Shown here one piece after another: positions 9,085 to 58,369 of a DNA stretch of 64,000 nucleotides (the first letter of the stretch is position 1; each line of letters opens with the position of its first letter). Origin of the DNA: Heterodontus francisci (Eukaryota); contig NC_090374.1 of NCBI RefSeq assembly GCF_036365525.1, forward strand, positions 14,797,168 through 14,861,167, written 5' to 3'. The notes beneath the pieces are model-generated. The model was not told where the DNA came from, did not search any database, and saw nothing but the letters and a program-made list of their open reading frames with translations. The position numbers were made by a program, and so were the translations under genes.

Positions 9085-9890
9085 AGTGCAGGGGGCAGCG
9101 TACCATCCTGGAATCACGTCTGCGACTACAGAAACGCCTGTTTGTTCCCCTAACTATAGAATCCCCAGTTGCTATTGCTTTTCTGATCTTCCTCCCCACC
9201 CCTGTACAGATGAGCCACCCTTTGGGCTATGGTCTTGGTACTGGCTGTACTTCCCCGATGGACCATTGGCCTCACCAGTATTCGGAACTGGACACTGGTT
9301 GGAGATCAAGATGCTCTCAGCAGATTCGTGCAATACCTGCTGCATCCTCCTTGTCCATCTGGCTGTTGCCCAATCGTTGCTACCTTCTCTCTCCTAAGCT
9401 GTGGAACTGGACACTGGTTGGAGATCAAGATGCTCTCAGCAGATTCGTGCAATACCTGCTGCATCCTCCTTGTCCATCTGGCTGTTGCCCAATCGTTGCT
9501 ACCTTCTCTCTCCTAAGCTGTGGGGCGACTGCATCCAGAAACGTGCTTTCCTCAAAACTCACAGTCTAGCAAAACAGCACGCTGACGGGAGCTGCTTTTC
9601 CAGCTCTGAAATTCAGAGCTCGAGCTCCTCCAGCTGATGACCCTTGCTGCACATGTGATTGTCCAGGACAGGAGAAGAGTCCTGCAGTTCCCACATGGAA
9701 CAGGATGAGCATTTCATGGGACTGAGGTGCACTACCATGTCTTTCTTTATTGTACTATTAACTAACTTATCAGAAATAAATATAAGACCAAAAGAAATAG
9801 TCACCAGCTACTCACTGATCAGCTTATTCTCTTATGCTGATGTTGCTTTAGGTTTTTTGTAACTCGCTCCCAGACACTCACTCTCCCCAG
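9085..9890 (-). mobile_element. CR1 5' portion (5' UTR and ORF1 N-terminus), decayed
   Basis: ORF 9613..9804 CSSCSMWE…HMCSK..LEELEL is homologous to the ORF1 zinc finger at 10171. Confidence 0.7.
9284..9521. repeat. Perfect 119-bp tandem duplication
   Basis: 9284-9402 = 9403-9521. Confidence 0.95.
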
Positions 9891-10170: not shown

Positions 10171-11067
10171 ATGGCTGGGCAGGTGATGTGCTGTAGCTGT
10201 ATGATGTGGGAGCTGGCTGTCCCCATTGTGAACGGCAGGGACCACATCTGCAGCAAGTGTTGGTTGCTGGAAGAACTCCGGCTCAGAGTTGATGATCTGG
10301 AATCTGAGCTTCAAACACTACGGCACATCCGGGAGGGGGAGAGTTACCTGGACGTTTTGTTTCAGGAGGCAGTCACACCTGGTAGATTAAGTAATTCAAA
10401 TTCAGTTAGTGATCAGGGACAACAGGGTGTGATTGCAAGTGAGGCAGGTAGGGGGATCCTGAGTTCAGGAGTGGAGGAGCCTCAGCCTTTGACCTTATCC
10501 AACAGGTACGAGATACTTGCTCCCTGTCTGGATGAGGAAAAGGGCTGCGGGGAGGATGAGCCAACTGACCATGGCACCATGGTGCAGAAGGCCATTCAAG
10601 AGGGGGGAGCAAAAAGACAAGTGGTAGTTTTTGGAGATTCTATAATTAGGGGGATAGATAGTATCCTTTGCAAGCCGGATCGGGAGTCCCGCATGGTGTG
10701 TTGCCTGCCCGGTGCCAGGGTGCAGGACATCTCTGACCGGCTTGAAAGGATATTGGAGCGGGAGGGGGAGGATCCAGTTGTTGTGGTCCACATTGGGACT
10801 AACAACATAGGCAAGGCTAGGATGGAGGACCTGTTTGGGGATTATAAAGCACTGGGAGCGAAATTAAGGAACAGGTCCTCGAGGGTCATAATTTCCGGAT
10901 TACTGCCCGAGCCACATGCAAATTGGCTTAGGGATAAGAATACTAGGGAAGTAAACAGGTGGCTAAGGGAGTGGTGTGGGAAAGAGGGGTTCCATTTCAT
11001 GGGGCATTGGCATCAGTTTTGGAACCGGGGGGATCTGTACCGATGGGACGGTCTCCACTTGAACTGA
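10171..11067 (+). CDS. CR1 ORF1: zinc finger, leucine zipper, SGNH esterase (premature stop ~20 codons early)
   Basis: CCSC…HICSKC, LEELRLRVDDLESEL, FGDSIIRG, HIGTNN, DGLH; the frame continues to a TAG at 11126-11128. Confidence 0.85.
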   Translation: MAGQVMCCSCMMWELAVPIVNGRDHICSKCWLLEELRLRVDDLESELQTLRHIREGESYLDVLFQEAVTPGRLSNSNSVSDQGQQGVIASEAGRGILSSGVEEPQPLTLSNRYEILAPCLDEEKGCGEDEPTDHGTMVQKAIQEGGAKRQVVVFGDSIIRGIDSILCKPDRESRMVCCLPGARVQDISDRLERILEREGEDPVVVVHIGTNNIGKARMEDLFGDYKALGAKLRNRSSRVIISGLLPEPHANWLRDKNTREVNRWLREWCGKEGFHFMGHWHQFWNRGDLYRWDGLHLN

Positions 11068-11126
11068 TCTGGAACCAGTGTTCTAGTGAAACGGATAAAT
11101 AGGGTGGTCTCTAGGACTTTAAACTA

Positions 11127-12680
11127 GTGACTCAGGGGGCAGGGAAAGGGAAAACGACAGGGAGTATGATGGTAAATAAAAAGGTAAGCAGCAGGTTAAC
11201 ATGTGTGCAGGAGGGTTTAAGTTCAAGGCAGACTATGAAAGAAGCAGAAAGGAAGGATAACTCAGGAGTTATTATTAGAGATGTTGGAAATCATGAGGGT
11301 AAGAAAGCTAGCATAAAGGCACTTTACCTGAATGCTCGTAGCATTCGTAACAAGGTTGATGAGTTAACGGCACAAATCATCACGAATAAATATGATTTGG
11401 TAGCCATTACGGAGACATGGTTACAGGTTGGTCACGACTGGGAGTTAAATATCCAGGCGTACCAGACTATTCGGAAGGACAGACAGGAAGGTAAGGGAGG
11501 TGGTGTAGCTCTGATATTCAAGGACGACATCAGGGCAGTGCTGAGAGATGATATAGGTTCTATGGAGAATGAGGTTGAATCAATTTGGGTGGAAATTAGA
11601 AACTCTAAGAAGAAAAAGTCATTGATAGGCGTAGTCTATAGGCCACCAAATAATATCACATTGGGGCGGGCAATAAACAAAGAAATAACTAATGCCTGTA
11701 AAAATGGTACGGCAATTATCATGGGGGATTTTAATCTACATGTAGATTGGTCGAACCAGCTCAGTCAGGGTAGCCTTGAGGAGGAGTTCATTGACTGTAT
11801 CCGTGATAGTTTTCTTGAACAGTATGGAATGGAACCGACGAGGGAGCAAGCTATCCTCGATCTAGTCCTGTGTGATGAGACAGGAATAATTAATGACCTC
11901 ATAGTTAGGGATCCTCTTGGAAGGAGTGATCACAGTATGGTTGAATTTAGAATACAGATGGAGAGTGTGAAGATAAAATCCAATACCAGGGTCCTGCGCT
12001 TGAACAAGGGGGACTACAATAGAATGAGGGAGGACTTGGCTAAAGTAGACTGGAAACAAAGATTTTATGGTGGGACAGTTGACGAGCAGTGGAGGACTTT
12101 CAAAGCAATTTTTCAAAGTGCTCAGCTAAAGTATATTCCAGTGAAAAGGAAGGACTGGAAGAAAAGGGGTAATATGCCATGGGTGTCTAAGGAAATAAGG
12201 GAGGCTATCAAATTGAAAGAGAAGGCATACAAAGTGGCCAAAAGCAGCTTGAAACTAGAAGATTGGGAAAACTTTAAAGGTCAACAGAAAGCCACAAAAA
12301 GAGCTATAAAGAAAAGTAAGATAGAACATGAGAAAAAACTAGCACAGAATATAAAGACAGATAGCAAAAGTTTCTATAAATATATAAAACGAAAAAGAGT
12401 GGCTAAAGTAAACGTTGGTCCTTTAGAGGATGAGAAGGGGAATTTAGTTATGGGATATGATGAAATGGCCGAGGCATTAAACAGGTATTTTGTATCGGTC
12501 TTCACAGTGGAGGACATTAATAACATGCCAGTAATTGACAAAGAGACGAACGTAGGTGAGGACCTGGAAACAATCATTATTACGGAAGAGGTAGTGTTGG
12601 GCCAGCTAATGGAGCTAAGGATTGATAAGTCTCCTGGCCCTAATGGAATGTCCCAGCTGATTGGAAAACAGCAGATGTGA
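11127..12680 (+). pseudogene. CR1 ORF2 N-terminal part: APE endonuclease
   Basis: YLNARSI, ITETW, GVVYRPP, MGDFN, SDH motifs; frameshifted by a deletion at ~12650. Confidence 0.85.
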
Positions 12681-14032
12681 CGCCACTGTTTAAAAAGGGA
12701 GGTAGACAAAAGATGGGGAATTATAGACCGGTTAGCTTAACCTCTGCAGTGGGGAAGATGCTTGAGTCTATTATCAAGGAAGAAATAGCAGGGCATCTCG
12801 ATAGAAATTGTCCCGTTGGGCAGACGCAGCATGGGTTCATGAAGGGCAGGTCATGCTTGACAAATCTTTTGGAATTCTATGATGACATTACGAGCAAGGT
12901 GGACAATGGGGACCCAGTGGATGTGGTGTACCTAGATTTCCAAAAGGCCTTAGACAAGGTGCCGCACAAGAGGCTGCTGCATAAGATAATGATGCATGGC
13001 GTCAGGGGTAAAGTATTAGCATGGATAGAGGATTGGTTGACTAACAGGAAGCAGAGAGTGGGGATAAATGAGTGCTATTCTGGTTGGCAATCAGTCACTA
13101 GTGGTGTGCCTCAGGGATCGGTGTTGGGACCGCAATTATTTACAATTTATATAGATGATTTGGAGTTGGGGACCACGTGTAGGGTGTCAAAGTTTGCAGA
13201 TGACACTAAGATGAGTGGCAGAGCAAAGTATGCAGATGACTGTGAAACTTTGCAGAGGAACATAGATACATTGAGTGAGTGGGCAAAGGTCTGGCAGACG
13301 GAATACAATGTTAATAAATGTGAAGTCATTCATTTCGGTAGGAGTAACAGTAAAAACGATTATTACTTGAATGGTAAAAAGTTGCAGCATGCTACTATGC
13401 AGAGGGACCTGGGTGTCCTTGTGCATGAATCGCAGAAGGTTGGTCTGCAGGTACAGCAAGTAATTAGGAAGGCAAATGGAATTTTGTCCTTCATTGCTAA
13501 AGGGATTGAGTTTAAAAGCAGAGAGGTTATGTTGCAGCTGTATAAGGTACTGGTGAGGCCGCACCTGGAGTACTGTGTGCAGTTTTGGTCTCCTTACTTG
13601 AGAAAGGATATACTGGCACTGGAGAGGGTGCAGAGGAGGTTCACTAGGTTGATTCCAGAGTTGAGGGGGTTGGCTTATGAGGAGAGACTGAGTAGATTGG
13701 GATTATATTCATTGGAATTCAGAAGAATGAGGGGGGATCTTACAGAAACATATAAAATCATGAAGGGAATAGATAAGATACAAGTAGAGAGGATGTTTCC
13801 ACTGGCAGGTGAAGCTAGGACAAGAGGGCATAGCCTCAAGATTAGAGGGAGCAGATTTAGGACTGAATTAAGAAGGAACTTCTTCACCCAGAGGGTTGCT
13901 AATCTGTGGAATTCCTTGCCCAGTGAAGTAGTTGACGCTTCTCCAGTAAACGTTTTTAAAGCTAAGGTAAATATCTTTTTGAACAATAAAGGAATTAAGG
14001 GATACGGTGGGAGCGCGGGTAAGTGGATCTGA
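12677..14032 (+). pseudogene. CR1 ORF2 C-terminal part: reverse transcriptase
   Basis: [36 protein letters not shown]. Confidence 0.9.
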
Positions 14033-14152
14033 GTCCACGAAAAGATCAGCCATGATCTTATTGAATCGCGGAGCAGGCTTAAGTGGCCGGACGGCCTACT
14101 CCTGCTCCTAGTTCTGATGATCTTATGATCTTATGACTCTGTATCTTGCCCG

Positions 14153-17100
14153 TTTTTTTCATCTCTATTTTTATAATATGGCCTTTATGCCCCAGGACCC
14201 TTTTATATATTTTATGTCGAGGTGGCCTTTATTTTTCTGGCCCCTTTATATACATTTTATAAAAATAACTTTATTAAAAAAAGATAAATAAAACAAAACT
14301 CAAATTAAAATGCCATTCTCGGCATCAATTATGCACTCCAGCCCCGACAGTGCTCACCGGTCGTGGAAGGCCTCAAGCGTACCGGCGGACGCCGCATGCT
14401 CCTTCTCCGGGGACAACTGGGCACGAACGTAACTGCGGAAGAGGGGCAGGCAATCAGGGAGGACGGACCCCCCGATGACCCGCAGCCTGGAAATGTGAAT
14501 TGCCACCTTGGCCAGGCCCAGGAGCAGACCAATGAGGAGATCCTCCTCCCGGCCCACGCCCCTCCGCATCGGGTGCCCAAAGATCAGGAGCGTGGGGCTG
14601 AAGTGCAACCAAAACCTGAGGAGTAGCCCCTTCAAATACTCAAACAGGGGCTGCAACCTCGCACACTCCATATACACGTGGAAAACGGACTCATCCGGAC
14701 CGCAGAATTTACAGGCGGCCTGGGAGTCCGTGAACCTACTTAAAAGTCTATAGCACGGGACTGCCCTGTGCAACACCCTCCACCCGAGGCCCCCAATGTA
14801 AAGGAGGATTCCCGCATAGAGAGACCTCCATCGGGGTTTCCCCTTGCTGCCAGATGGCAACACGGACTGCCAGGGCGTGTCTGACCAGCTGATGAGGGCG
14901 AGGAAGTGGAGAGTGAGCAGGAGCAGCCCGCACAGGAAACCCCTCCCCCCCAATTGGAATGACCCGGAGGGCATTTCCGATGAGCAGTTCCGGCCAAGCC
15001 CCCTCGTCACCCGCAGTGAGGGGCGTCCTGGGGGCTTCAGCTACTTATTCGGCCGTCGGTCCATCCCTGGGGCCGGCCCACCAGACAGCCAGTTTTTAAG
15101 CAGGCGGAGATCGCCCCTCTTCGGCAGCAGGACGATGACCACCCTGCGCCACGAGACGGGCATCTCCCCGGTCGCCAGGCTTTCCCCCAGGACCTGCGCG
15201 TAATCATCCCTCAGGATGTCCCAGAATGCCCTGAGGAACTCCACGGTCAGCCCGTCCAGCCCTGGGAATTTGCCCCTCGAGAGCTGGTGGAGGGCGCCAG
15301 TCAGCTCCGCCAACGTGAGCGGAGCCTCCAATCCTTTGGCGCCCTCCGGGCTGACCTGCGGCTGGTCCTCCCACAAAACTCTGCGCGCGTCCTCGCTGGA
15401 CGGATCCGGAGAGAACAACGCACTGTAATAAGTACGGACCAGGAGGTCCATTCCCTCTGGATCTGTGACGGAGGATCCGTTGTCAGCCAGCAGCTCAGCG
15501 AGCTGCTTACGGACATCCCGCCATTTTTCCAGCGAGTAGAAGAAGGGTGAGGCGTTGTCCAAATCTTCCAGGATCTGGATCCTCGACCTCACGTATGCGC
15601 CTCGGGACCCTATGTGCTGCAGGTCCTCAGCGCGCCCTTCTCTTTGTACGCCTACCACAGGGCCAGGTCCGCGACGGCATGACCGAGGCGGGACTCCAAG
15701 TCGAGCACCTCCCTCTCTAGGTGCCTGATCTCGGCTTCCCGCCTCTTGGTCGACCCCTTCGCGTACTCCTGACTGAAGACGCGGATGTGAGTCTTGCCCA
15801 CATCCCACCATAGCCTCAAGGAGGGGAAGCCCCCCTGCTTCCTTCTCCAGTCAGCCCAGAATCGACGGAATGAGTCCCGGAATCGCTCATCTTCCAGCAG
15901 CCGGTTGTTAAAGTGCCAGTACGCGGACCCCGTGTGAGGAGCGGAATGAACTCTGCCCACACCAGGTGGTGGTCCAAGCACTGCACCAGCCGCATGGAGG
16001 CTGCCGAGACGCGGGAGACGAGCGCCTGCAAAAAGTAGAGGCAGCCGATTCGGGACCCTCCTCCTCCAGACCTCCAGGTGAAGGCGCTGGAGTTGGGATG
16101 GAGATTCCGCCAGACGTCCACCAAGTTAAGGGAGCTGATCAGTTCCCTCAACTTCTCCACCGACGCTTCGCCGCGCTGGGGACCGCAGCGATCCTCCACC
16201 TCGAGGGTGCAGTTAAAATCCCCCCCAAGGATGATGCACTTGCCGCTATCGATGGAGCTCAAGAGAGCGGACACTTCTTCAAAGAAGCGTGTGGGTTTCC
16301 TGCAGAAAATTCACCGCATATCTCCCTTCCCTGAGGACTGAGAGATTGTGAAATCTGCGGTGAGACCCCCTGCTGCCCTTGATGTTGAGGCTGGCTATGG
16401 TTATCTTCATGTCAAAGGTACTTAAAACCCGTCACCAACACCTCACTGTGAGGAGGGAACGGAAGTTCACCTGGCCCTCCACTCCCCCAGCAACCCATCG
16501 AGGAATGCATTAAAACGGCACCTCTCAACCAGTTTCGTGCCCTCACCCTTGCCCGCTTTCTTGAGGGCGGCATGGACAGACTGGATGATCAGCTCCAGAC
16601 TCGACCAACGGCCGAGGGCCAGCTGAACTTTATCGCGGCAACCCCTGCAAGCCGCGAGGAAATCCCGGAGTTCCGCCGTGGGGATGAGAGGAGACTCGGT
16701 GGGAGGCACGAGGGACTCTACCACCTCACTGGCAATGGAATCAAGGTTGTCCTCCATGCCCCAAACCGAGTCCCCATCCTCCTCCTGGTTGTCACTGCCA
16801 GCGGTCGACACACCCACCACACACTGTGGGCGGACGTCCCGGCCGCGCCAGCTGGTCCCGCCTCCGTCACGATCCCACCCACAGGATCGATGGCGGAGGA
16901 GTCCCCTCTGGGTTCTAAGATGGAACTGGAGCCTGTGGGCACCAGCGGTTCAGGACCCTGCTCCACCTCCGTCCCCAGGCCAATGAGCAGTCCAGGGGAG
17001 ACGGAAGTTCCCGACTCCGGAAATCCAGCCGGTGCTGAGACCGGAGGTGAAGAGAGGAGGCCATCTCCCGCTCCGCCAGCACCCACAGGCCCAGCAGATG

Positions 17101-19103
17101 GGGCAGCATTTTCAGTTATAACCAGGTCTGGTGTCTCCTGGTTGTCAGTGGATTCTGGCTGGGAGGGCCGACCCTTTGGGGACTCGCCCTCCCCTCCACG
17201 CAGGCCACCGGACCCAGTGGCAGAACGGGAGGCTTCTCCAGAAGCGTCCCCAGACTCCCCCACCACAAGTAGGGCTTCAATTGCTCCCACAGGAGGGGCT
17301 GCATGTAGCGGGGCCTCCCCCTCCCCTCCATCCTGAAGAATAGGGAGCTCCTACCCAGACTTTGCAGTCTTGATGTTGGTGGTGGTAGGGGGAACCTGGG
17401 GACCCGAAACAGGAGACAGCTCCCCTCCAACAGATGGGCCCTGCACCTCAGGGCCCTGTGTTACCTCTGTGGAGGGGTGCCTTCTCCTCTTTTTCCCACT
17501 GGGGCACAGAGGCTCAGAGACCTCCATGTCATCAGAGGCCTCCGCCTCCGCACCCTTTTTTTTTTAGTTACTCTGGGCCTGAGCCCAGCCTTGGGACAGG
17601 TGGATTCCCTGGGAGCGGGCCTTGGGCTGAGCCCAGACTCAGATTGTGTCACGGCGTCCAGGGAATGAGCCTCTCAGTGTTTACTTTTCCTCCACGCCTT
17701 CCTTCCACTCGGACGGGCACTCCCCTCCCCGCCGGAGGCTGTGAAAACCACAGCCTCCGGAACCGACTAAGCGGTGTCTGTTGGATGTGTGGGGTGAGTG
17801 GGAGGAGGTGCAGTGTCGCCACCCTGGGCCGCCGAAGTGGAACTGGCGGCCGGGAGGTTGGGGCAGTTCTTATGAACATGCCCCACCCCCTTGCAGACGT
17901 GGCACCACACCCCGTCTAAGGTCCAAAAGACGTGGTAGACCGTCCCTGGAACTCCACACTGAAGTGGTCCTCCAAGACCTCCTCCCACGCCAGCTGCATA
18001 AATAGCTGGCGGCGGAAGGAGTAGACATGTCGGAGGCTGTGCTCCCGAAGACTAAGCCGGACTGGGGTGATCCCCGACCTCACCTCCCCCAGATGGTGCA
18101 GGTGGGGAAGGAGGAGCTCACTGGGAATAAAGGGCGGCACATTTGATAACATTATCCGCTGCGCAGTGGCCCCTAGAGGGTTCACCGGCAGGAAAGTCCA
18201 ACCCACAGTGAGCCCTTTATTCAGGGCCAGGGGCACGGCCCGCTCGGTCTTCAGGAAGAACACAGCCTGCCCGTACATTTTTGAGGCTGCCACAATGGCT
18301 GAGGGGCCGACAACCTCGGCCATTGCCTTTACGCAGGCCTCTATAGACATTGGGGTGGGGATAGCTCTTTACCCCATGGCTCGAAGTAATGAATTTAAAA
18401 GGTGACGGGGTCACACGGGCGGCCACAGAGGCTACAGCCGCATAGGTATGAGAAGGCCCCGCCACCAGTGATGATGGGCTTGCCATGGTTCAAGAGCCAA
18501 ACCCATCCCCAAATTGCAGGCAAACAAGCAAAAACAAAGAAACCAACTAGTAGGTTTGGGGAGAGGCTGAGGGAATACAGGAAAGGGGAAAGACAGGTTG
18601 CAAGCGATGACTTTGCTTTTTTTTTCTCCTTGAAGGGTGGTACTCAGAGCACTGTAAACACTCCTGGTCTTCCGGTTTTCTGGTTGTGGGAGGGGTCTTT
18701 TCCTGGGTCAGCCGAAAGCTGCCCAGGCACTAGTTAGATCCTTCTGTCTCTATAGCCAGGCAGCTTCAGCTGACTCAGGCTGGGCAATTAGGGTGGGGAG
18801 GGAGCTTCCTTGTGTATTCAGTGCAATGGCACAGATCCCTGCAGAATTGTACAGCCCCCACCCCTTGTTGTTCCGGCCTCTTCCACCTCCCACAACAGTC
18901 CAAATGAATTAAAGCCTGGTGCTCGACACCCACCTCGAAATACAGCCTTATTGCCAAAGTCTTTCCTCCTCTGCAGCAAAAGTTGTTCAAAATTTTGCAG
19001 TTCAGTCCTCAGCTCTCCCTCTACAACAGCACCTCCAGCAACTGACTGCAGCACTATCAGCTGCACCTCGTTGATGCACTCAGCACCTCCAACTGGTTAG
19101 CAG
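14153..19103 (-). mobile_element. Tx1-clade LINE copy 1: both ends present, internally deleted (RT core missing)
   Basis: ORF1 with CHVCKGVGHVHKNC (17767-18350), endonuclease GGDFNC (15816..16274), C-terminal CKFC..ESVFHVYMEC (14354..15010); T-tract at 14153; colinear with copy 2 apart from deletions. Confidence 0.9.
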
Positions 19104-19447
19104 CTAACCCCGTTTTTTTTTTTCTTTTTTTTTTAGCTGCAAGACGGAGGAGTCGCTGGAGGAGGTGGAGGGTGAGAGACGCTGCCCGGAGGGGTCGGGA
19201 TGGGTCGGGCGGCCCGGGATCCGGGGTAGGGAGTCACAGGGGGCGGGGGGAAGGGGATTAATGCCCCCCAACTCTTTCTGCCGCCCTCCTTTTCCCCCAT
19301 TTTTTTCCCATGCGGATTCCCTATGTAAACAGGTCACGCTGCAGTTCCAGCTTACGGCCACTGGCGGCGCTGCAGTTTGAGGCCTGGATTTTTAAAAACC
19401 CACAGCCTGGGCTGAGGGGCGGCTTCAGTCTGGGAAATGCAGACCTG

Positions 19448-19578
19448 GTGCTGTCCCGGGCTGTATGATAGAGAATCCAGGGAGCTTTACTCTGTATCTA
19501 ACCCCCGTGCTGTACCTGTCCTGGGGAGTGTTTGATGTGGACAGTGTGGAGGGAGCTTGACTCTGTATCTAACCCCCG
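19448..19578 (+). repeat. ~71-bp satellite monomers, left part of an array split by Tx1 copy 2
   Basis: gggagctttactctgtatctaacccccgtgctgtacctgtcctggggagtgtttgatgtggacagtgtgga; unit starts at 19480 and 19551. Confidence 0.85.
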
Positions 19579-19705
19579 TTTTTTTTTTTTTTCTTTTTTT
19601 TTTATATTTTATGTCGAGGGGGCCTTTATTCCTCAGGCCCCCTTTATATACACACTTATATTTTTAAAATAACTTTATTAAAACCAGATAAATAAACAAA
19701 AAAAC

Positions 19706-22700
19706 TCAAATTAAAATGCCATTCTCGGCGTCGACGATGCACTCCAGTCCCTGCGGTGCCCACCGGTCGCGGAAGGCCTCAAGCGTACCGGCGGACACCG
19801 CATGCTCCTTTTCCAGGGACACCCAGGCGCGAACGTAACCGTGGAAGAGGGGCAGGCAAACGGGGAGGACGGACCCCCCGACGGCCCGCAACCTGGACCT
19901 GTGAATTGCCACCTTGGCCAGGCCCAGGAGCAGACCGACGAGGAGATCCTCCTCCCGGCCCAAGCCCCTCCGCACCGGGTGCCCAAAGATCAGGAGCGTG
20001 GGACTGAAGTGCAGCCAGAATTTGAGGAGCAGCCCCTTCAGATACTCAAATAGGGGCTGCAACCTCGCACACTCCATATAAATGTGGAACACGGACTCGT
20101 CCAGGCCGCAGAAAGTACAGCTGGCCTGGGAGTCCGTGAACCTACTTAAAAGCCTATTGCACGGGACTGCTCTGTGCAGCACCCTCCACCCCAGGTCCCC
20201 GATGTAAAGGGGGAAGACTCCCGCGTCGAGAGACCTCCATCGGGGTTTCCCCTCGCCGCCAGATGGCAACGCGGACCGCCAGGGCGTGTCCGGCCGGCTG
20301 ACGAGGGCGAGGAAGTGGAGAGTGTGCAGGAGCAGCCCGTACAGGAAACCCCTCCGCGCCGATTGGAATGGCACGGAGGGCATTTCCTAGAGGCGGCTCG
20401 GGTTGTGCGGGACCGGCTCCCGAGGAGGGTTTCGGGGCCTGGGTCCGATGAGCAGTTCCGGCCGAGCGGGGGTCAGCTCGGCCGGGATCGCTCCGCACTC
20501 CCGAGCCCCCTCGCCATCCGCAGTGAGGGGCGTCCCGGGGGTTTCGGCTACTCCTCCGCCCGCCGGACCGTCCCCGGAGTCGGCCGCCCGGACAGCCGAG
20601 GCGCTCTCCTCCGCCGGCGGGGGAGCGCCCTGACTGGAGGCGACCATGTTCCAGACTCGGAAAAGATCCCGGTAAAAGACAGGCAACTCCCTCAGAGAGG
20701 CGCGGCTAACGGACTCCACCGGGAGCTGCGTGTCGTCTTGAAGGCAGTGACACTGGCGGAAAAAATACGTCGCCAGCGCACACCATCTGGGAGGACGCTC
20801 GACGTACAGGTATCTCTGCAGGGTCCGAAGGCGGAGAGTCGCAGCCTGGGTGCGGACGCACACCAGCGACTGACCGCCCTCCTCGATCGGGAGACTCAGG
20901 ACCGCGGCAGAGACCCAGTGTTTCCTCTTGCCCCAGAAGAAATCGACGAGTTTCTACTGGATCTTGGTGGCAAATACAGGGGGCGGGGCCAAAGTGACCA
21001 ACCGGTACCACAGCATGGAGGCCATCAGTTGGTTTATGACCAACGCTCGGCCCCTGTAGGAAAGCACTCGGAGCAGTCCTGTCCAGCGCCCCAGCCGAGC
21101 AGTGACTTTCGCCTCCAACTCCTGCCAGTTTGCCGGCCAGGCTTCCTCAGCGGGGCTAAGGTGGACTCCCAGATAGAGGAGGTGCGTGGTGCTCCACGCA
21201 AAAGGTGTCATCTCCTCCGGCAGGGAGTCCACCCGCCACTGACCAACCAGGAGTCCGGAACATTTCTCCCAATTGATCCTCGCGGAGGACGCGGCAGAAA
21301 AGGTCTGCTGGCAGTCGCGCATCCTCCGCAAGTCAACGGGATCTGTGATTGCGAGGAGCACGTCGTCGGCGTAAGCCGAGAGGACGACCCGCATGGCCGG
21401 CTCGCGCAGAGCCAATCCCGTCAACCTCCTGCGAAGCAGGCACAGGAAGGGCTCCACGCAGATGGTATACAATTGGCCGGACATGGGGCACCCCTGACGC
21501 ACTCCTCTCCCAAATCGAAGGGGCGCCGTCAAGGACCCGTTAACTTTGACTGGACACTCTGCGGCGGCGTATAAAAGTCGGACCCGGGCCACGAAATGCG
21601 GCCCGAGTCCGAAAGCGCGCAGAGTCCCGAAAAGGTAATCGTGATCCACCCTGTCGAACGCCTTCTCCTGATCGAGGGAGAGAAAGGCGACCGACTGACC
21701 AGTCCTCTGGGAAAGATGGATCAGGTCCCGGACCAGGTGGATGTTGTCCTGGATGGACCGGCCCGGGACCGTGTAGGACTGGTCGGGGTGGATCATGTGG
21801 GCCAGCTCGGAGCCCAGGCGGGTAGACATAGCCCGGGCAAAGATCTTATAATCCGTGCTGAGGAGGGAGACCGGACGCCAGTTTTTAAGCAGGCGGAGAT
21901 CGCCCCTCTTTGGCAGCAGGACGATGACCGCCCTGCGCCACGAGAGGGGCATCTCCCCGGTCGCCAGGCTTTCCCCCAGGACCCGCGCGTAATCGTCCCC
22001 CAGGACGTCCCAGAACGCCCTGAGGAACTCCACGGTCAACCCATCCAGCCCTGGGGATTTGCCCCTCGAGAGCTGGTGGAGGGCGCCGGTCAGCTCCGCC
22101 AACGTGAGCGGAGCCTCCAATCCTTCGGCGGCTCCGGGCTGACCTGCGGCAGGTCCTCCCACAAAACTCTGCGCGCATCCTCGCTGGACGGATCCGGAGA
22201 GAACAACGCACTGTAATACGTCCGGACCAGGAGGCCCATTCCCTCCGGATCCGTGATGGAGGATCCGTCGTCGGCCAGCAGCTCGACGAGCTGCTTACGG
22301 ACCCCCCGCCATTTTTCCAGCGAGTAGAAGAAGGGTGAGGCGCGGTCCAAATCTTCCAGGATCTGGATCCGCGACCTCACGTACGCGCCTCGGGACCCTA
22401 TGAGCTGCAGGTTCCTCAGCGCGCCCTTCTTTTTGTACGCCTGCCACAGGGCCGGGTCCGCGACGGCATGACCGAGGCGGGATTCCAAGTCGAGCACCTC
22501 CCTCTCAAGGCGCCCGATCTCGGCTTCCCGCCTCTTGGTCGACCCCCTCGCGTACTCCTGACAGAAGACGCGGATGTGAGTCTTGCCCACATCCCACCAT
22601 AGCCTCAAGGAGGGGAAGCCCCCCTGCTTCCTTCTCCAGTCGGCCCAGAATCGACAGAACGAGTCCCGAAATCGCACGTCCTCCAGCAGCCGGTTGTTAA

Positions 22701-23439
22701 AGTGCCAGTACGCGGACCCCGCCCGCGTGTGGAGTGGAGTGAACTCCGCCCACACCAGGCGGTGGTCCGAGCACGGCACCAGCCGCATGGAGGCCGCCGA
22801 AACGCGGGAGACGTACGCCTGCGAAATGTAGAGGTGGTCGATTCGCGACCCCCCTCCTCCAGACCTCCACGTGAAGGCGCTGGAGTCAGGATGGAGATTC
22901 CGCCAGACGTCCACCAAGTTAAGGGAGCTGATCAGTCCCCTCAACTTCTCCACCGACGCTTGGCCGCGCTGGGGACCGGAGCGATCCCCCACCTCGAGGG
23001 TGCAGTTAAAATCCCCCCCGAGGATGATGCACTCGCCGCTATCGATGGAGCTCAAGAGAGCGGACACTTCTTCAAAGAAGCGCGCTTGCAACGCGCTGGG
23101 CCTGGGCGCGTACACGTTCACAAAGTGGAGCGGCACGCTACCCAGGTGAACGGCGAGGTGGAGCAAGTGGCCCGGCACTAGCTCCTTGACCCCCAAGATC
23201 TCCGGCTGAAAAGTCGGGGCCAACAAGATAGCCACCCCACTAGAAATAGGGGTGAGGTGACTCATGTAGACCCCACCCTGCCACTCCAGGAGCCAGGTGG
23301 CTTCGTCTCCCGGAACGGTGTGGGTTTCCTGCAGAAAGCTCACCGCGTATCTCCCTTCCCTAAGGACTGAGAGATTGTGAAATCTGCGGTGAGCCCCTCT
23401 GCTGCCGTTGATGTTGAGGCTGGCTATGGTTATCTTCAT
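19706..23439 (-). pseudogene. Tx1 ORF2: APE endonuclease, reverse transcriptase, C-terminal Cys/His motif
   Basis: MKITIASLNING, LQETH, GGDFNC, SDH (22090..23439); NWRPVSLL, DQEKAFDRV, GVRQGCPMS, YADD (20954..22162); CTFC..ESVFHIYMEC (19706..20383); a frameshift near 22130 and stops at 20954 and 20387. Confidence 0.9.
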
Positions 23440-23471
23440 GTCAAAGGTACTTAAAACCCGTCACCAACACC

Positions 23472-25537
23472 TCACTGTGAGGAGGGAGTGGAAGTGCACC
23501 TGGCCCTCCACTCCCCCAGCAACCCATTGAGGAACACATTAAAACGGCGCCTCTCAACCAGTTTCACGTCCGCGCGCTTGCCCGCTATCTTAAGGGCGGC
23601 ACGGACGGACTGGATGATCAGCGCCAGATTCGACCAACGGTCGAGGGCCAGCTGAACTTTATTGCGGCAACCTCTGCAAGCCGCGAGGAAATCCCGGAGT
23701 TCCGCCGTGGGGATGAGAGGAGATTCGGTGGGAGGCACGAGGGACTCCACCACCTCACTGGCGATGGAATCAAGATCATCCTCCGTGCCCCGCACCGAAT
23801 CCCCATCCTCCTCCGGGTCGTCACCGCCAGCGGCCGACACATCCACCACACACTGTGGGGCAGACGTCCCGGCCGCGCCAGCTGGTCCCGCCTCCGTCAC
23901 GATCCCACCCCCAGGATCAATGGCGGAGGAGTCCTCTCTGGGTTCTATTGTGAAACTGGAGCCTGTAGGCACCAGCGGTTCAGGACCCCCCTCCACCTCC
24001 ATCACCCAGGCCAATGAGTGGTCCAGGGGAGACAGAAGTTCCGGACTCCGGGAAACCAGCCGGAGCCAAGACTGGAGGCGGCGAGAGGAGGCCATCTCCC
24101 GCTCCGCCAGCACCCACAGGCCCAGCAGATGGGGCAGCATTCTCAGTTATAACTGGGTCGGGTGTCTCCTGGTTGGTGGTGGACTCCGGCTGGGAGGCCC
24201 GACCCTCTGGGGCCTCGCCCTCCCCTTCATTCAGGGCACCCGACCCAGTAGCAGTGGCGGAATGGGCGGTTTCCCCAGGCTCCCCCACCACAAGCAGGGC
24301 CCCACTTACTCCTTCAGGAGGGGCCTCACGTACCGGGGCCATCCCCTCCCCTCCATCCTGAGGAATAGGGAGCACCTGCCCGGACTTTGCAGCCTTGGTG
24401 GTGGCGGTAGGGGGAACCTGAGGACCAGAAACAGGAGGCAGCTCCCCTCCAACAGATGGGCCCTGCACCTCAGGGCCCTGTGTTATTTCTGTGGAGGGGT
24501 GCCTTCTCCTCTTTTTCGCATTTGGGCGCGGAGACTCAGAGACCTCCATGTCATCAGAGGCCTCCGCCTCCGCACCCTTTTTTCCCTTTTTAGTCACCCT
24601 GGGCCTGAGCCCAGCCCTGGGACAGGTGGATTCCATGGGAATGGGCTTTGGGCTGAGCTCAGGCTCGGGTTGAGTCAAAGTGGCCAGGGGACGCGCCTCA
24701 CGATGTTTCTTTTTTTCCCCGCGTCTTCCTTCCGCTCGGTCGGACGCTCCCCTCCCCGCCAGAGGCTGTGAAAACCACAGCCTCCGGAACCGACTGAGCG
24801 GTGTCTGTTGGATGTGTGGGGGGAGTGGGAGGAGGTGCTGTGGAACCACTCTGGGCCGCCGAGGTGGAGCTGGCGGCCGGGAGGTTGGGGCAGTTCTTAC
24901 GAACATGCCCCACCCCCTTGCAGACGTGGCACCGCGCCCCGTCCGAGGTCCAAAAGACGCGGTAGGCTGTCCCCTGGAACTCCACATTAAATTGGCCCTC
25001 CGTGTCCTCCTCCCATGCCAGCTGCATAAATAACTGGCGGCGGAAGGAGTAGACATGTTGGAGGCTGTGCTCCCGAAGACCAAGCCGGACTGGGGTGATC
25101 CCCGACCTCACCTCCCCCAGATGGTGCAGGTGGGGGAGGAGGAGCTCACTGGGAATGAAGGGTGGGACGTTGGACAACATTATCCGATGCGCAGTGGCCC
25201 CCAGAGGGTCCACTGGCAGGAAGGTCCCCCCCACAGTGAGCCCTTTACTCAGGGCCAGGGACACCGCCCGCTCGGTCTTCAAAAAGAACACAGCCTTCCC
25301 ATACATCTTTGAGGCCGCAACAATGGCCGAGGGGCCGACAACCACGGCCATTGCCTTAACGCAGGCCTCAATAGACATGTTGGGGTGGGGATAGCTCTTC
25401 ACCCCATGGCTGCATGTCAATAATTTAAAGGGTGACGGGGCCACGTGGGCAGCCACAGAAGCTGCAGCTGCGTAGATAGTAGAGGGCCCCGCCACCGGTG
25501 ATGAAGGGCTTGCCATGGGTCTAAGAGCTAAACCCAC
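23472..25537 (-). pseudogene. Tx1 ORF1 (gag-like, CCHC zinc knuckle, long low-complexity linker), two frameshifts
   Basis: ORFs 24698..25537 (ASKMYGKAVFFL, LSNVPPFI, VYSFRRQLFM, CHVCKGVGHVRKNC), 23980..25083 and 23472..24140. Confidence 0.85.
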
Positions 25538-26194
25538 CCCAAATTGTGGACTTGCACACTAAATAACAGCGACTCACAGAAAAATTTGAAAAGACAAACA
25601 AACAAACAACAGGTTAGTGGAGAGGCTGAGGTAAGAGAGGAGAGGCAAAGGCAGGCTGGAAGGGATGACTTGCTTTCTGGAGGTGGTGCTCACAGTACAC
25701 TTAAAACAAACAGTCTTTGAAGTTGGTCTTCCGGTCCTCTGGTTGGGGGAGTCGTCTTCACCTGGGTCAGCTGAAGCTGCCCAGGCACTATCTATCCCCT
25801 TCCGTCTGTTTAGCTGGGCAGCTTCAGCTGACCCAGGCTTGGCAATTGGGGTGGGGAGGGAGCTTTCCTGTGTGCTTTTGCAGCAGCACAGATTCCTGCT
25901 GAATTGGCAGCCCCACCCCTTGTTGTTCCAGCCACTTGTTCCTCCCCCAACAGTCCAAAGTAAATTACTGGTGTTCAGCACCCACCTCCAGACAAAGCCT
26001 TGTTTCCAAAAAATGTCCCTTTCTTCTCTTTAATGGAGACTGTTGTTGGAGTTTTCCTCTGCTTGTTGGTAGCTGCTCTCCCTTGCTCAGTGCAGCTCCT
26101 CTCTCCACCTCTGCAACCTCCAACTGCCACCAGCACTCTCAGCTGCACCTCGTTGAGGCTCTCAACACTCAGGTTCCCAAATCAGAGAGCAGCC

Positions 26195-26325
26195 AATCCC
26201 AGTGCTGTCCCTGTCCTGGAAGTGTTTGATGGGACAGTGTAGTGGGGGCTCTACTCTGTATCTAATGCGTGCTGTACCTGTGATGGGAGTGCTTAATGGG
26301 ATAGAGTAGAGGAGATTTATTCTAT
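26195..26325 (+). repeat. ~67-bp satellite monomers, right part of the array split by Tx1 copy 2
   Basis: gtgctgtccctgtcctggaagtgtttgatgggacagtgtag…actctgtatcta; units start at 26202 and 26269. Confidence 0.85.
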
Positions 26326-42245: not shown

Positions 42246-43050
42246 TGTGAAGTTATTCACTTTGCTGGGAAGAACAGAAATGCAGAGTATTTCTTAAATG
42301 GTGAGAGATTGGGAAGTGTTGATGTCCAAAGGGACCTGGGTGTCCTTGTTCATAAGTCACTGAAAGCTAACCTGCAGGTGCAGCAAGCAATTAGGAAGGC
42401 AAATGCTATGTTGGACTTTATTGTAAGAGGATGTGAGTAGAGGAGTAAAGGAGTCTTGCTGCAATTGTGTAGAGCCTTGGTGAGACTGCACCTGGAGTAT
42501 TGTGTATAGTTTTGGTCTCCTTACCTAAGGAAGGATATACTTTCCATACAGGGAGTGTAATAGCGGTTTGCCAGACTGATCCTTGGGATGGTCGGATTGA
42601 GGAGACTGGGCCTATATTCTCTAGAATTTAGAAGAATGAGTGGTGATCTCACTGAAGCATACAAAATTCTTACAGGGCTCGACAGGGTTCTTGCAGGTAA
42701 GATGTTTCCCCTGGCTTGAGGCGTCTAGAACCAGGGGACACAGACTCAGAATAAGAGATAGGCCATTTAGGACTGAGATGAGAAGGAATTTCTTCATGCA
42801 GAGTCTGGTGTATCTGTTGAATTCTCTACCACAGAGGGCTATTGAGGCTCAGTCATTGAGTATGTCCAAGGAAAAGACTGATAGATTTCTAGACATTAAA
42901 GATGTCAAGGGATATGGGGATAGTGCAGGAAAAGGGTGTTGAAGTGGAAGATCAGCCATGATCAAGTTGATTAGTGGAACAGGCTCAAGGGGCTGAATGG
43001 CCGACTCCTGCTCCTAGTTCTTATGATCCTATGTTTCCAAGTTCCTATGT
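42246..43050 (+). mobile_element. CR1 3' part (continuation of the 33350 element)
   Basis: CEVIHF resumes; 3' tail ttcttatgatcctatg. Confidence 0.8.
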
Positions 43051-51688: not shown

Positions 51689-52885
51689 TGTTACGACCAG
51701 GTGAGGAAGGGGTCTCAGACTCCCCTTTTGCCCCTTCTCTGGGTTGACCACAGCAGGGTTTATCTTTTTTAACAGAGATTTAACTTACCACCTCAGTGAG
51801 CGCTTACTCCTGTTCCTCTAATATATTTGCAAATGAACCAATCAGACAGGTTTTCTTTCTTGAGTTTAAACAAGAAAGATGTAAGTTTATTAACCTTATC
51901 ACTCTAAACCGGTTAAAATTACTAAAATACGCTATGCATCCATACCCACNNNNNNNNNNNNNNNNNNNNNNNNNNNNNNNNNNNNNNNNNNNNNNNNNNN
52001 NNNNNNNNNNNNNNNNNNNNNNNNNNNNNNNNNNNNNNNNNNNNNNNNNNNNNNNNNNNNNNNNNNNNNNNNNNNNNNNNNNNNNNNNNNNNNNNNNNNN
52101 NNNNNNNNNNNNNNNNNNNNNNNNNNNNNNNNNNNNNAAGCAGAGTTGGGAGGTTGGAATCGAGTCCTTTATAAATGGAATGTAAATACTGAGTCTCAGT
52201 CCCAGAGTTTTTAGTTGAAATTGCAGTCCTGAAGATCTCGCTGGGCCATGTGCACGGGTCAGGCTGGTTACTCAGGTTCTGGAAGGCAGGAGAGAGACTT
52301 TATCCTTGTCCCCCGGTTGCTGACTGTAAGGATCTGTAGACTTGTCTTCCACCAGACGCAGATTGAGGCTTCTCAGGATCTCTACTAGAGAGAGAGAGAG
52401 AGACAGAGATGCTGTTCCCTTGCTGGATCCCAGTGACTGTCTGACTTCTGAGTCACCAATCACAAATCTCTTGAGTGGGCCAAGCAGTCATGTGATGTGA
52501 CCACCACTTTATGTCTGAATCAGCATCTTCCGGAATGATCTTTGAAATTCAGGGCTCTCCTCCTAGCTGTTCAGACATACTTGGCAGGGGAGATTTGACT
52601 CTTTCAATGTCAATGGGTGTCGATGGCTTTTGATGACCCCTCATTGATAAGGTCATCCCAGATAAGTGAATCAGAGAGCACCCCATTGTTCTGACTAGGC
52701 TGAGTAATCATATCTGTCTCCAGACTGATTCTTTGGTATTTCATATGCAAATTGTGCTTGGCCATCTGGGCTGCTAGCTGTTCAGTTTTTAAAAGTTATT
52801 TGTAACAATGTCCAGTACAAGTCTCAGGCCAAGTTCCATGCGATAAAACTAATATTTCCATTTGGCATGTGGGATTTCCATCACA
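51689..52885 (-). mobile_element. 5' LTR of Gypsy element A (spans the assembly gap)
   Basis: TGTTACGACC…CCATCACA; pairs with 44650-45702. Confidence 0.85.
51950..52137. other. Assembly gap (188 N)
   Basis: N run. Confidence 1.
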
Positions 52886-57800: not shown

Positions 57801-58130
57801 TTTAAAAAAAACTTTATGTTACCCACTTATATTTTCTCATACATTCTCTTTGTCTTCTTTCCTTTTTCAGGTCTCCCAAACACTTTCAGTACTGACTCTC
57901 TTGGTATAATGAATCAGACATTGATCATAAACCTTCTTTTCCTGTCCCATTTTAAACTCAATATCTTTAGTCATCCAAGAAGCTGTAGTATTGGATGTTC
58001 TTCCTTTCGCCATCCTAGGAATGTTTTTAGCCTGTACCTGAAATATCTCCTCATTAAAGGCCCCCATTGCTCACATTCTGTTTCACCTGTCTATCTTGGT
58101 TTTGAACCCATCAACTATAAACCATCTGAA

Positions 58131-58369
58131 CCCCTCTGTTATATTCCAGCCTGTAACTCACTGTTATTTATCCATTATTTAATGTACAAACTACCCAAAC
58201 CCCTCTGTTATATTCCAGCCTGTAACTCACTGTTATTTATCCATTATTCTATGTATAAACTACCCAAACCCCTCTGTTATATTCCAGCCTGTAACTCACT
58301 GTTATTTATCCATTATTCTATGTATAAACTACCCAAACCCCTCTGTTATATTCTAGCCTGTAACTCACT
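58131..58369. repeat. 69-bp minisatellite, ~3.5 copies
   Basis: cccctctgttatattccagcctgtaactcact… starts at 58131, 58200, 58269, 58338. Confidence 0.95.

Follow-up and report, generated by a model that had tools for sequence, protein, structure and literature searches.

Three retro-insertions at one nucleotide of an abundant ~70-bp repeat: a candidate target-specific Tx1-clade LINE in Heterodontus francisci

Target-specific retrotransposons that lack long terminal repeats (non-LTR) fall into three main groups, among them the Tx1 clade (PMC4640811), whose documented targets include Tx1D, U2, U5, 5S, microsatellites, DNA transposons and a category given as 'Sat, satellites' (PMC4494074). The described families include Keno in U2 small nuclear RNA (snRNA), Kibi in (TC)n, Koshi in (TTC)n, Tx1-Mar in Mariner-N4_AMi and the 'Sat' families of Fig. 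3 of the same survey, which counts a family as target-specific when one sequence type is present in >20% of its flanks (PMC4494074). The type element of the clade is Tx1L of Xenopus laevis. Its endonuclease (Tx1L-EN, residues 1-239) is highly specific, with nicking in vitro confined almost entirely to the genomic target, and the bB6-bB5 hairpin loop of the enzyme is assigned to the minor groove on the downstream side of the nick (PMC1950540). The Tx1-mobilised SINEU-3 forms 'tandem insertions sandwiching a TSD', that is, a target-site duplication (PMC4494074). Here we describe a 64,000-nt stretch of contig NC_090374.1 of Heterodontus francisci (the window), in which two copies of a Tx1-clade long interspersed nuclear element (LINE) and a third, unrelated insert occupy the same bond of a ~70-bp repeat.

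The locus resembles Tx1L in the nucleotide-exact insertion into a repeated non-genic sequence, for which a specific endonuclease is documented in the case of Tx1L (PMC1950540). However, the Tx1L target lies inside the Tx1D DNA transposon (PMC4494074, PMC1950540), whereas here it is a ~70-bp tandem or dispersed repeat, and the copy number here appears far higher. With other Tx1 families the locus shares the homing to a multicopy sequence; for these families, stacks that sandwich a TSD and the mobilisation of non-autonomous RNA to the same site are on record (PMC4494074).

Insertion junctions and empty sites

Three poly(A)-tailed inserts, all on the minus strand, are located in the array at one phosphodiester bond, directly after the G of ...CTAACCCC(C)G. 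The array and its inserts are arranged as follows.

14136-14152, plus strand: 17-bp remnant of a repeat unit, ACTCTGTATCTTGCCCG, forming the left flank of copy 1 and matching the 17-mer motif ACTCTGTATCTAACCCC at 14/17 positions
14153-19103, minus strand: Tx1-clade LINE copy 1, internally deleted, with a T7 tail at 14153-14159
19104-19112, plus strand: CTAACCCCG, target copy bounded by copy 1 (at its 5' end) and the orphan tail; possible TSD of copy 1
19113-19134, minus strand: tail of the third insert (the orphan), T11 C T10 on the plus strand, A10 G A11 in sense
19135-19447, minus strand: orphan body, 313 bp, 62% G+C
19448-19578, plus strand: two units of the repeat, 60 and 71 bp long, and an empty joint at 19507/19508
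19579-26193, minus strand: Tx1-clade LINE copy 2, 6.6 kb
26194-26202, plus strand: CAATCCCAG, a degenerate version of the CTAACCCCG segment, which is either a TSD or a stretch of an adjacent monomer
26203-26325, plus strand: about two more repeat units with an empty joint at 26269/26270; the array stops at a 5'-truncated CR1-like LINE

On the plus strand, the junction of copy 1 (14152/14153) reads ...CTTGCCCG/T7, that of the orphan (19112/19113) ...CTAACCCCG/T11 C T10 and that of copy 2 (19578/19579) ...CTAACCCCCG/T14 C T10. The right half of the unit restarts after the orphan at 19448 as GTGCTGTCCC and after copy 2 at 26194 as CAATCCCAG followed by TGCTGTCCC, while CTAACCCCG at 19104-19112 adjoins copy 1 at its 5' end (19103). 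Two uninterrupted joints show the site in its empty state, namely ...ACTCTGTATCTAACCCCCG/TGCTGTACCTG at 19507/19508 (in a longer reading its right side is TGCTGTACC) and ...ACTCTGTATCTAATGCG/TGCTGTACC at 26269/26270, both on the plus strand. The empty target at both joints is G^TGCTGT, preceded by ...CTAACCCC(C). The motif ACTCTGTATCTAACCCC, with up to three mismatches allowed, has five matches in the window against 0.12 expected from shuffling, and four of the five are junctions or empty sites. Read in register, the units run head to tail with lengths of 60-76 bp, and about 4.5 of them are present here (60, 71, 76 and 61 bp and the 17-bp remnant).

An initial annotation of this DNA had placed an intact monomer joint within 19489-19518, the poly(A) of copy 2 right after 19578 with the monomer resuming at 26194, and the T-tract of copy 1 right after ACTCTGTATCTTGCCCG at 14152 with CTAACCCCG beyond its 5' end, and had assigned both LINEs a common orientation and a GCTGCT 5' terminus. 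All of this is borne out by the sequence read: the joint is at 19507/19508, both copies are on the minus strand and both begin with GCTGCT in sense. Its count of two insertions at one nucleotide was right for the LINEs and left out the third insert.

This third insert, the orphan, is 335 bp long (19113-19447). It sits exactly between ...CCCCG and GTGCTGT and has its own A-tail, and because of this exact position at the bond and this tail it is a third retro-insertion at the same place. Public contigs from four sequencing runs, one for each of four organisms (A-D, of which A is the likely source organism), were placed on window positions 18700-20200, with T-runs skipped. The orphan was covered by one contig (19141-19507) at a depth of 23.8 with 0 differences, as a single-copy sequence. 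Its body resembles neither the LINE nor any other part of the window, which rules out a deleted LINE remnant, and neither the orphan nor the LINE ends matched an Rfam family. The 9-mer CTAACCCCG between copy 1 and the orphan matches the stacked arrangement described for SINEU-3 (PMC4494074). The tails of the orphan and copy 2 share the inner pattern A10-G-A(n) in sense (A10 G A11 and A10 G A14), a likeness that could be due to chance, to a templated tail or to a tail copied from LINE RNA before a template switch. As a separate observation, a ~50-bp stretch of the orphan (19312-19362) reached a depth of 148-300 in organisms B and C, where the remaining orphan was absent, and may be a small conserved or repeated motif.

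The array is bordered by fragments of CR1-like LINEs on both sides, at 10405-14135 and 26326-~26650, both on the plus strand. The left fragment has a (TCTTATGA)n tail that stops at 14135, and the right one is 5'-truncated and starts in the middle of its reverse transcriptase (RT). Further diverged CR1-like copies are scattered in the window, e.g., a tail at 43005-43050.

Clade membership and condition of the LINE

Copy 2 provides the more complete view of the element, whose parts are listed below; the open reading frames are abbreviated as ORF, the untranslated regions as UTR and the apurinic/apyrimidinic endonuclease type as APE.

19579-19603, minus strand: poly(A) tail, T14 C T10 on the plus strand
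19604-19705, minus strand: 3' UTR, abundant in organism A only
19706-20383, minus strand: C-terminal piece of ORF2 with a C-x2-C...H-x4-C motif; weak zf-RVT match
20954-22162, minus strand: RT piece of ORF2, 402 aa; RVT_1, E 8.9e-39
22090-23439, minus strand: N-terminal piece of ORF2, 449 aa uninterrupted, APE-type endonuclease and linker; Exo_endo_phos, E 6.4e-18
23472-25981, minus strand: ORF1 region in several broken frames, with a CCHC zinc knuckle at ~24890-24931
25982-26193, minus strand: 5' UTR and 5' terminus, the last ~25 nt not alignable with copy 1

The Swiss-Prot entry for the ORF2 of Xenopus laevis Tx1 (YTX2_XENLA, P0204) was reached through a search with a turtle relative, and the pieces were then compared with it directly by BLASTP. 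The endonuclease and linker are 48% identical to Tx1L ORF2 over residues 1-438 (397 bits), the RT piece is 64% identical over residues 443-832 (511 bits) and the C-terminal piece 49% over residues 1077-1292 (172 bits), with the Cys/His motif C-x2-C...H-x4-C kept. The three pieces are collinear with Tx1L ORF2, and the two elements thus have in common the order of APE, linker, RT and C-terminal Cys/His motif. The catalytic motifs N/E/D/N/D/H are present and aligned with those of L1-EN and Tx1L. Comparison with the ORF2p of human LINE-1 (L1), for which structures are solved, gave 98 bits for the endonuclease piece and 144 bits for the RT piece, and comparison with R2 gave at most 91 bits. There is little doubt, as far as pairwise scores can tell, that the LINE is a Tx1-clade element, as the initial annotation had assigned it. 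Human LINE-1 belongs to the same superfamily and shares with the element the APE endonuclease, the RT, the poly(A) tail, target-primed reverse transcription (TPRT) and the trans-mobilisation of cellular RNAs, but its similarity is much weaker and it nicks a loose TTTT/AA consensus at dispersed positions (PMC1950540).

The nearest database proteins are unnamed fragments with 65-73% identity, including a gene model of the skate Amblyraja radiata named 'ZNF830' (P0040), and the closest relatives also comprise P0001/P0215 (an 18-kb ENA contig), P0002, P0014 and P0213. The sole gapped place in the endonuclease alignment with Tx1L is the bB6-bB5 hairpin. Its loop is in a short form (...RSGGGG-SRID...) in both window copies and in five database relatives, whereas it is 4 residues longer in Tx1L and in the turtle elements. 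The sea-turtle Tx1-like elements (e.g., P0143 and P0121) differ in this longer loop and have endonucleases 45-50% identical to that of the window, while the endonuclease of the skate P0040 is 73% identical and has the short loop in common with it. A lineage-specific loop would fit a lineage-specific target. In P0040, annotated as 'zinc finger protein 830', ZNF830 is fused to this Tx1-type endonuclease; a LINE insertion has probably misled the annotation here, so that the fusion would be an artefact. No relative was found in metagenome scans with the ORF2 C-terminal piece and with P0213, and scans of genome contigs found nothing. A lone match of the repeat motif in a phage-like contig, met among viral contigs, was dismissed as chance.

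Both copies are dead, because ORF2 is frameshifted between its pieces in copy 2 and ORF1 is broken. The ORF1 region (2.7 kb of broken ORFs) matched no Pfam family, and a protein atlas gave weak leads only. Copy 1 aligns with copy 2 in blocks of 85-93% identity and has internal deletions; by tblastn with Tx1L ORF2, it is without residues ~41-119 and ~525-1103 in Tx1L numbering. The G+C content of the LINE is ~60%, and the observed/expected ratio of CpG is 0.72 in copy 2, 0.57 in copy 1 and 0.42 in the window, which fits copy 2 being the younger.

Abundance of the repeat, independence of the insertions and other explanations

In the contigs of the four organisms, the depth over repeat bins was 4-6e5 in A, 5-8e5 in B, 1-2.6e6 in C and ~1e4 in D, compared with ~24 for single-copy sequence (the orphan contig, 23.8); since summed contig depth does not equal copy number, these values are taken only as 'thousands of times single copy'. 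Numerous contigs run from unit to unit in all four organisms. The initial annotation had called the repeat an abundant ~70-bp satellite, and its abundance is indeed satellite-like, on account of this depth and not of the ~4.5 units in the window, for which Tandem Repeats Finder (TRF) made no call. The ORF2 C-terminal region reached a depth of 1-3e5 in A, B and C. The 3' UTR of the LINE had a depth of ~1e5 in A, was modest in D and was essentially absent in B and C, and the 5' end had a depth of ~2e3 to 1.5e4 in A, with values close to zero in B and C. In A the repeat was several-fold deeper than the 3' end of the LINE and ~100-fold deeper than its 5' end. In one contig of organism D the match to the repeat extends to 19508 and T9 follows, which is a junction at the same nucleotide in another species. 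Because the repeat occurs independently of the LINE ends and is far more abundant, it is the target and not a terminal part of the LINE. In related species this repeat is accompanied by Tx1 elements that are akin to the present one but have different UTRs.

The presence of the repeat on both sides of copy 2 could also mean that the units belong to the element, as terminal repeats or as flanks transduced from a master copy, a view that the initial annotation had itself raised. We find this hardly credible: the poly(A) stands between the 3' UTR and the repeat and so puts the repeat outside the transcript end, uninterrupted joints of monomer to monomer exist, and the repeat is much deeper than the LINE ends in A and abundant in B and C without these UTRs. 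Another alternative concerns the origin of the two LINE copies, which are adjacent, in the same orientation and in one tandem array that favours unequal exchange; one LINE insertion might have been duplicated later with its flanking monomers by unequal crossing-over, and the specificity would then rest on fewer events. The aligned copies and the contig table were therefore read at twelve sites where the copies in the genome differ from copy 2, and copy 1 has the population letter at 10 of them. At 19825, 19842, 19860 and 20121, the four sites with a letter unlike that of copy 2 in at least 96% of the genomic copies, the majority letter is found in copy 1, so that the two LINEs have no rare derived state in common there. 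At the non-CpG sites 19811, 20021 and 20041 the two copies have alternative alleles, each common genome-wide (50%, 32% and 28%), as expected from different source subfamilies and not from drift after duplication. The tails differ (T7 in copy 1, T14CT10 in copy 2), the 3' UTR of copy 1 carries an additional ~47-nt segment, the 5'-terminal ~20-25 nt are not alignable past the common GCTGCT, and the deletions are unlike. These differences in common alleles and in the ends argue for independent insertions of the two copies, which agrees with the initial annotation. The orphan is moreover a separate event at the same nucleotide, and a single duplicated insertion is accordingly unlikely, although a variant in which the duplication came very soon after that insertion can, strictly, still be entertained.

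A further possibility is that no endonuclease reads the sequence at all and that the array is a regional hotspot, open, fragile or prone to nicking, for any poly(A) retro-insert, the shared nucleotide being a preferred breakage point. The insertion of a non-LINE sequence, the orphan, at this nucleotide and the CR1-like LINEs that adjoin the array on both sides would be in its favour. However, the CR1-like elements meet the array at other positions (14135/14136 and 26325/26326), a nucleotide-exact reuse three times over is the signature of an enzyme, and Tx1L-EN, the closest characterised relative, nicks its own target specifically in vitro (PMC1950540), which makes the hotspot very improbable.

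The reading of a target-specific LINE, which we retain, has several points weighing against it. The site specificity rests on three junctions, all in one array that might have a history of local rearrangement. In the terms of the flank criterion (>20%; PMC4494074), the repeat is found at 3/3 window junctions and in one contig of organism D, the only listed contig from which the junction is known in another species. The junction of copy 1 is the weakest of the three, because its flank of only 17 bp (14136-14152) directly abuts the (TCTTATGA)n octamer tail of the CR1-like LINE, and TCTGTAT recurs in a further copy of this tail; the CR1-like tail could thus explain part of the likeness. The ~9-bp degenerate TSD proposed in the initial annotation is not demonstrable: between the right-hand 9-mers (CTAACCCCG for copy 1 and CAATCCCAG for copy 2) and the corresponding left-hand sequences there are mismatches at 3-4 of 9-10 positions, and the right-hand ones may come from other monomers.

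The window also contains a different tandem repeat at 58129-58369 (69-bp unit, 3.5 copies, 97% identity), whose sequence is unrelated to the LINE target, a perfect tandem duplication at 9284-9523 (119-bp unit, 2.0 copies, 100% identity) and a run of 188 N at 51950-52137, which is an assembly gap or masked sequence.

Proposed mechanism and its significance

We consider it likely that a Tx1-clade family with an APE endonuclease and RT, ~6.6 kb long and poly(A)-tailed, integrates by TPRT at one bond of the abundant ~70-bp repeat. By analogy with Tx1L, the ORF2 endonuclease would recognise the repeat, the enzyme itself reading the sequence, and would nick the plus strand between the G and the T of CTAACCCC(C)G^TGCTGT. 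The 3'-OH released in this way would serve as primer for cDNA, with the poly(A) end of the RNA as template, and this priming would be the reason why every insert starts with a T-run right after the G. A second-strand cleavage ~9 bp upstream, or in the neighbouring unit, would then finish the integration. Three such events appear to have taken place in one short array, leaving a presumably older LINE (copy 1), a presumably younger and near full-length LINE (copy 2) and the orphan, which was most likely brought in by the same machinery through trans-mobilisation or a template switch from LINE RNA. The target may serve the family as a harmless landing site, or 'safe harbour'.

A broader version of this proposal seems to us possible but rather doubtful, namely that the ~70-bp repeat is a long-lived landing pad across species for several Tx1 families, which would have the same ORF2 and species-specific UTRs, and that the tails are templated rather than added, as the A10-G-A(n) pattern common to copy 2 and the orphan would then indicate. 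Templated tails could arise from read-through transcripts pairing with the nicked target or from a template switch of the LINE RNA. If true, either route would make the family a natural system of precise integration, addressed by sequence, which in addition deposits retrocopies of cellular RNA at one address.

Satellite targeting by Tx1 families is already on record (PMC4494074), and the new part is a target for which we found no description. The target CTAACCCC(C)G^TGCTGT and the ~70-bp unit were not found in the searched literature, including that on sharks and other elasmobranchs; Repbase and Dfam were outside this search and may hold the family. The statement of the initial annotation that the target is undescribed therefore stands for the literature searched, while the wider idea of a Tx1 family homing to a satellite has listed precedents.

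Gene models such as the 'ZNF830' fusion of the skate hold LINE endonuclease sequence and should be treated with caution. For genome annotation, the target-specific insertion would account for recurring stacks of LINEs and retrocopies inside the repeat. If confirmed genome-wide, the element would represent a target-specific LINE of the APE type that has reached a very high copy number in a cartilaginous-fish-like genome and whose target is both compact and defined. Its many natural filled and empty sites would be material for studying how an APE endonuclease reads sequence, for which the short bB6-bB5 loop is an obvious candidate, and the same machinery would be able to place other RNAs at one address.

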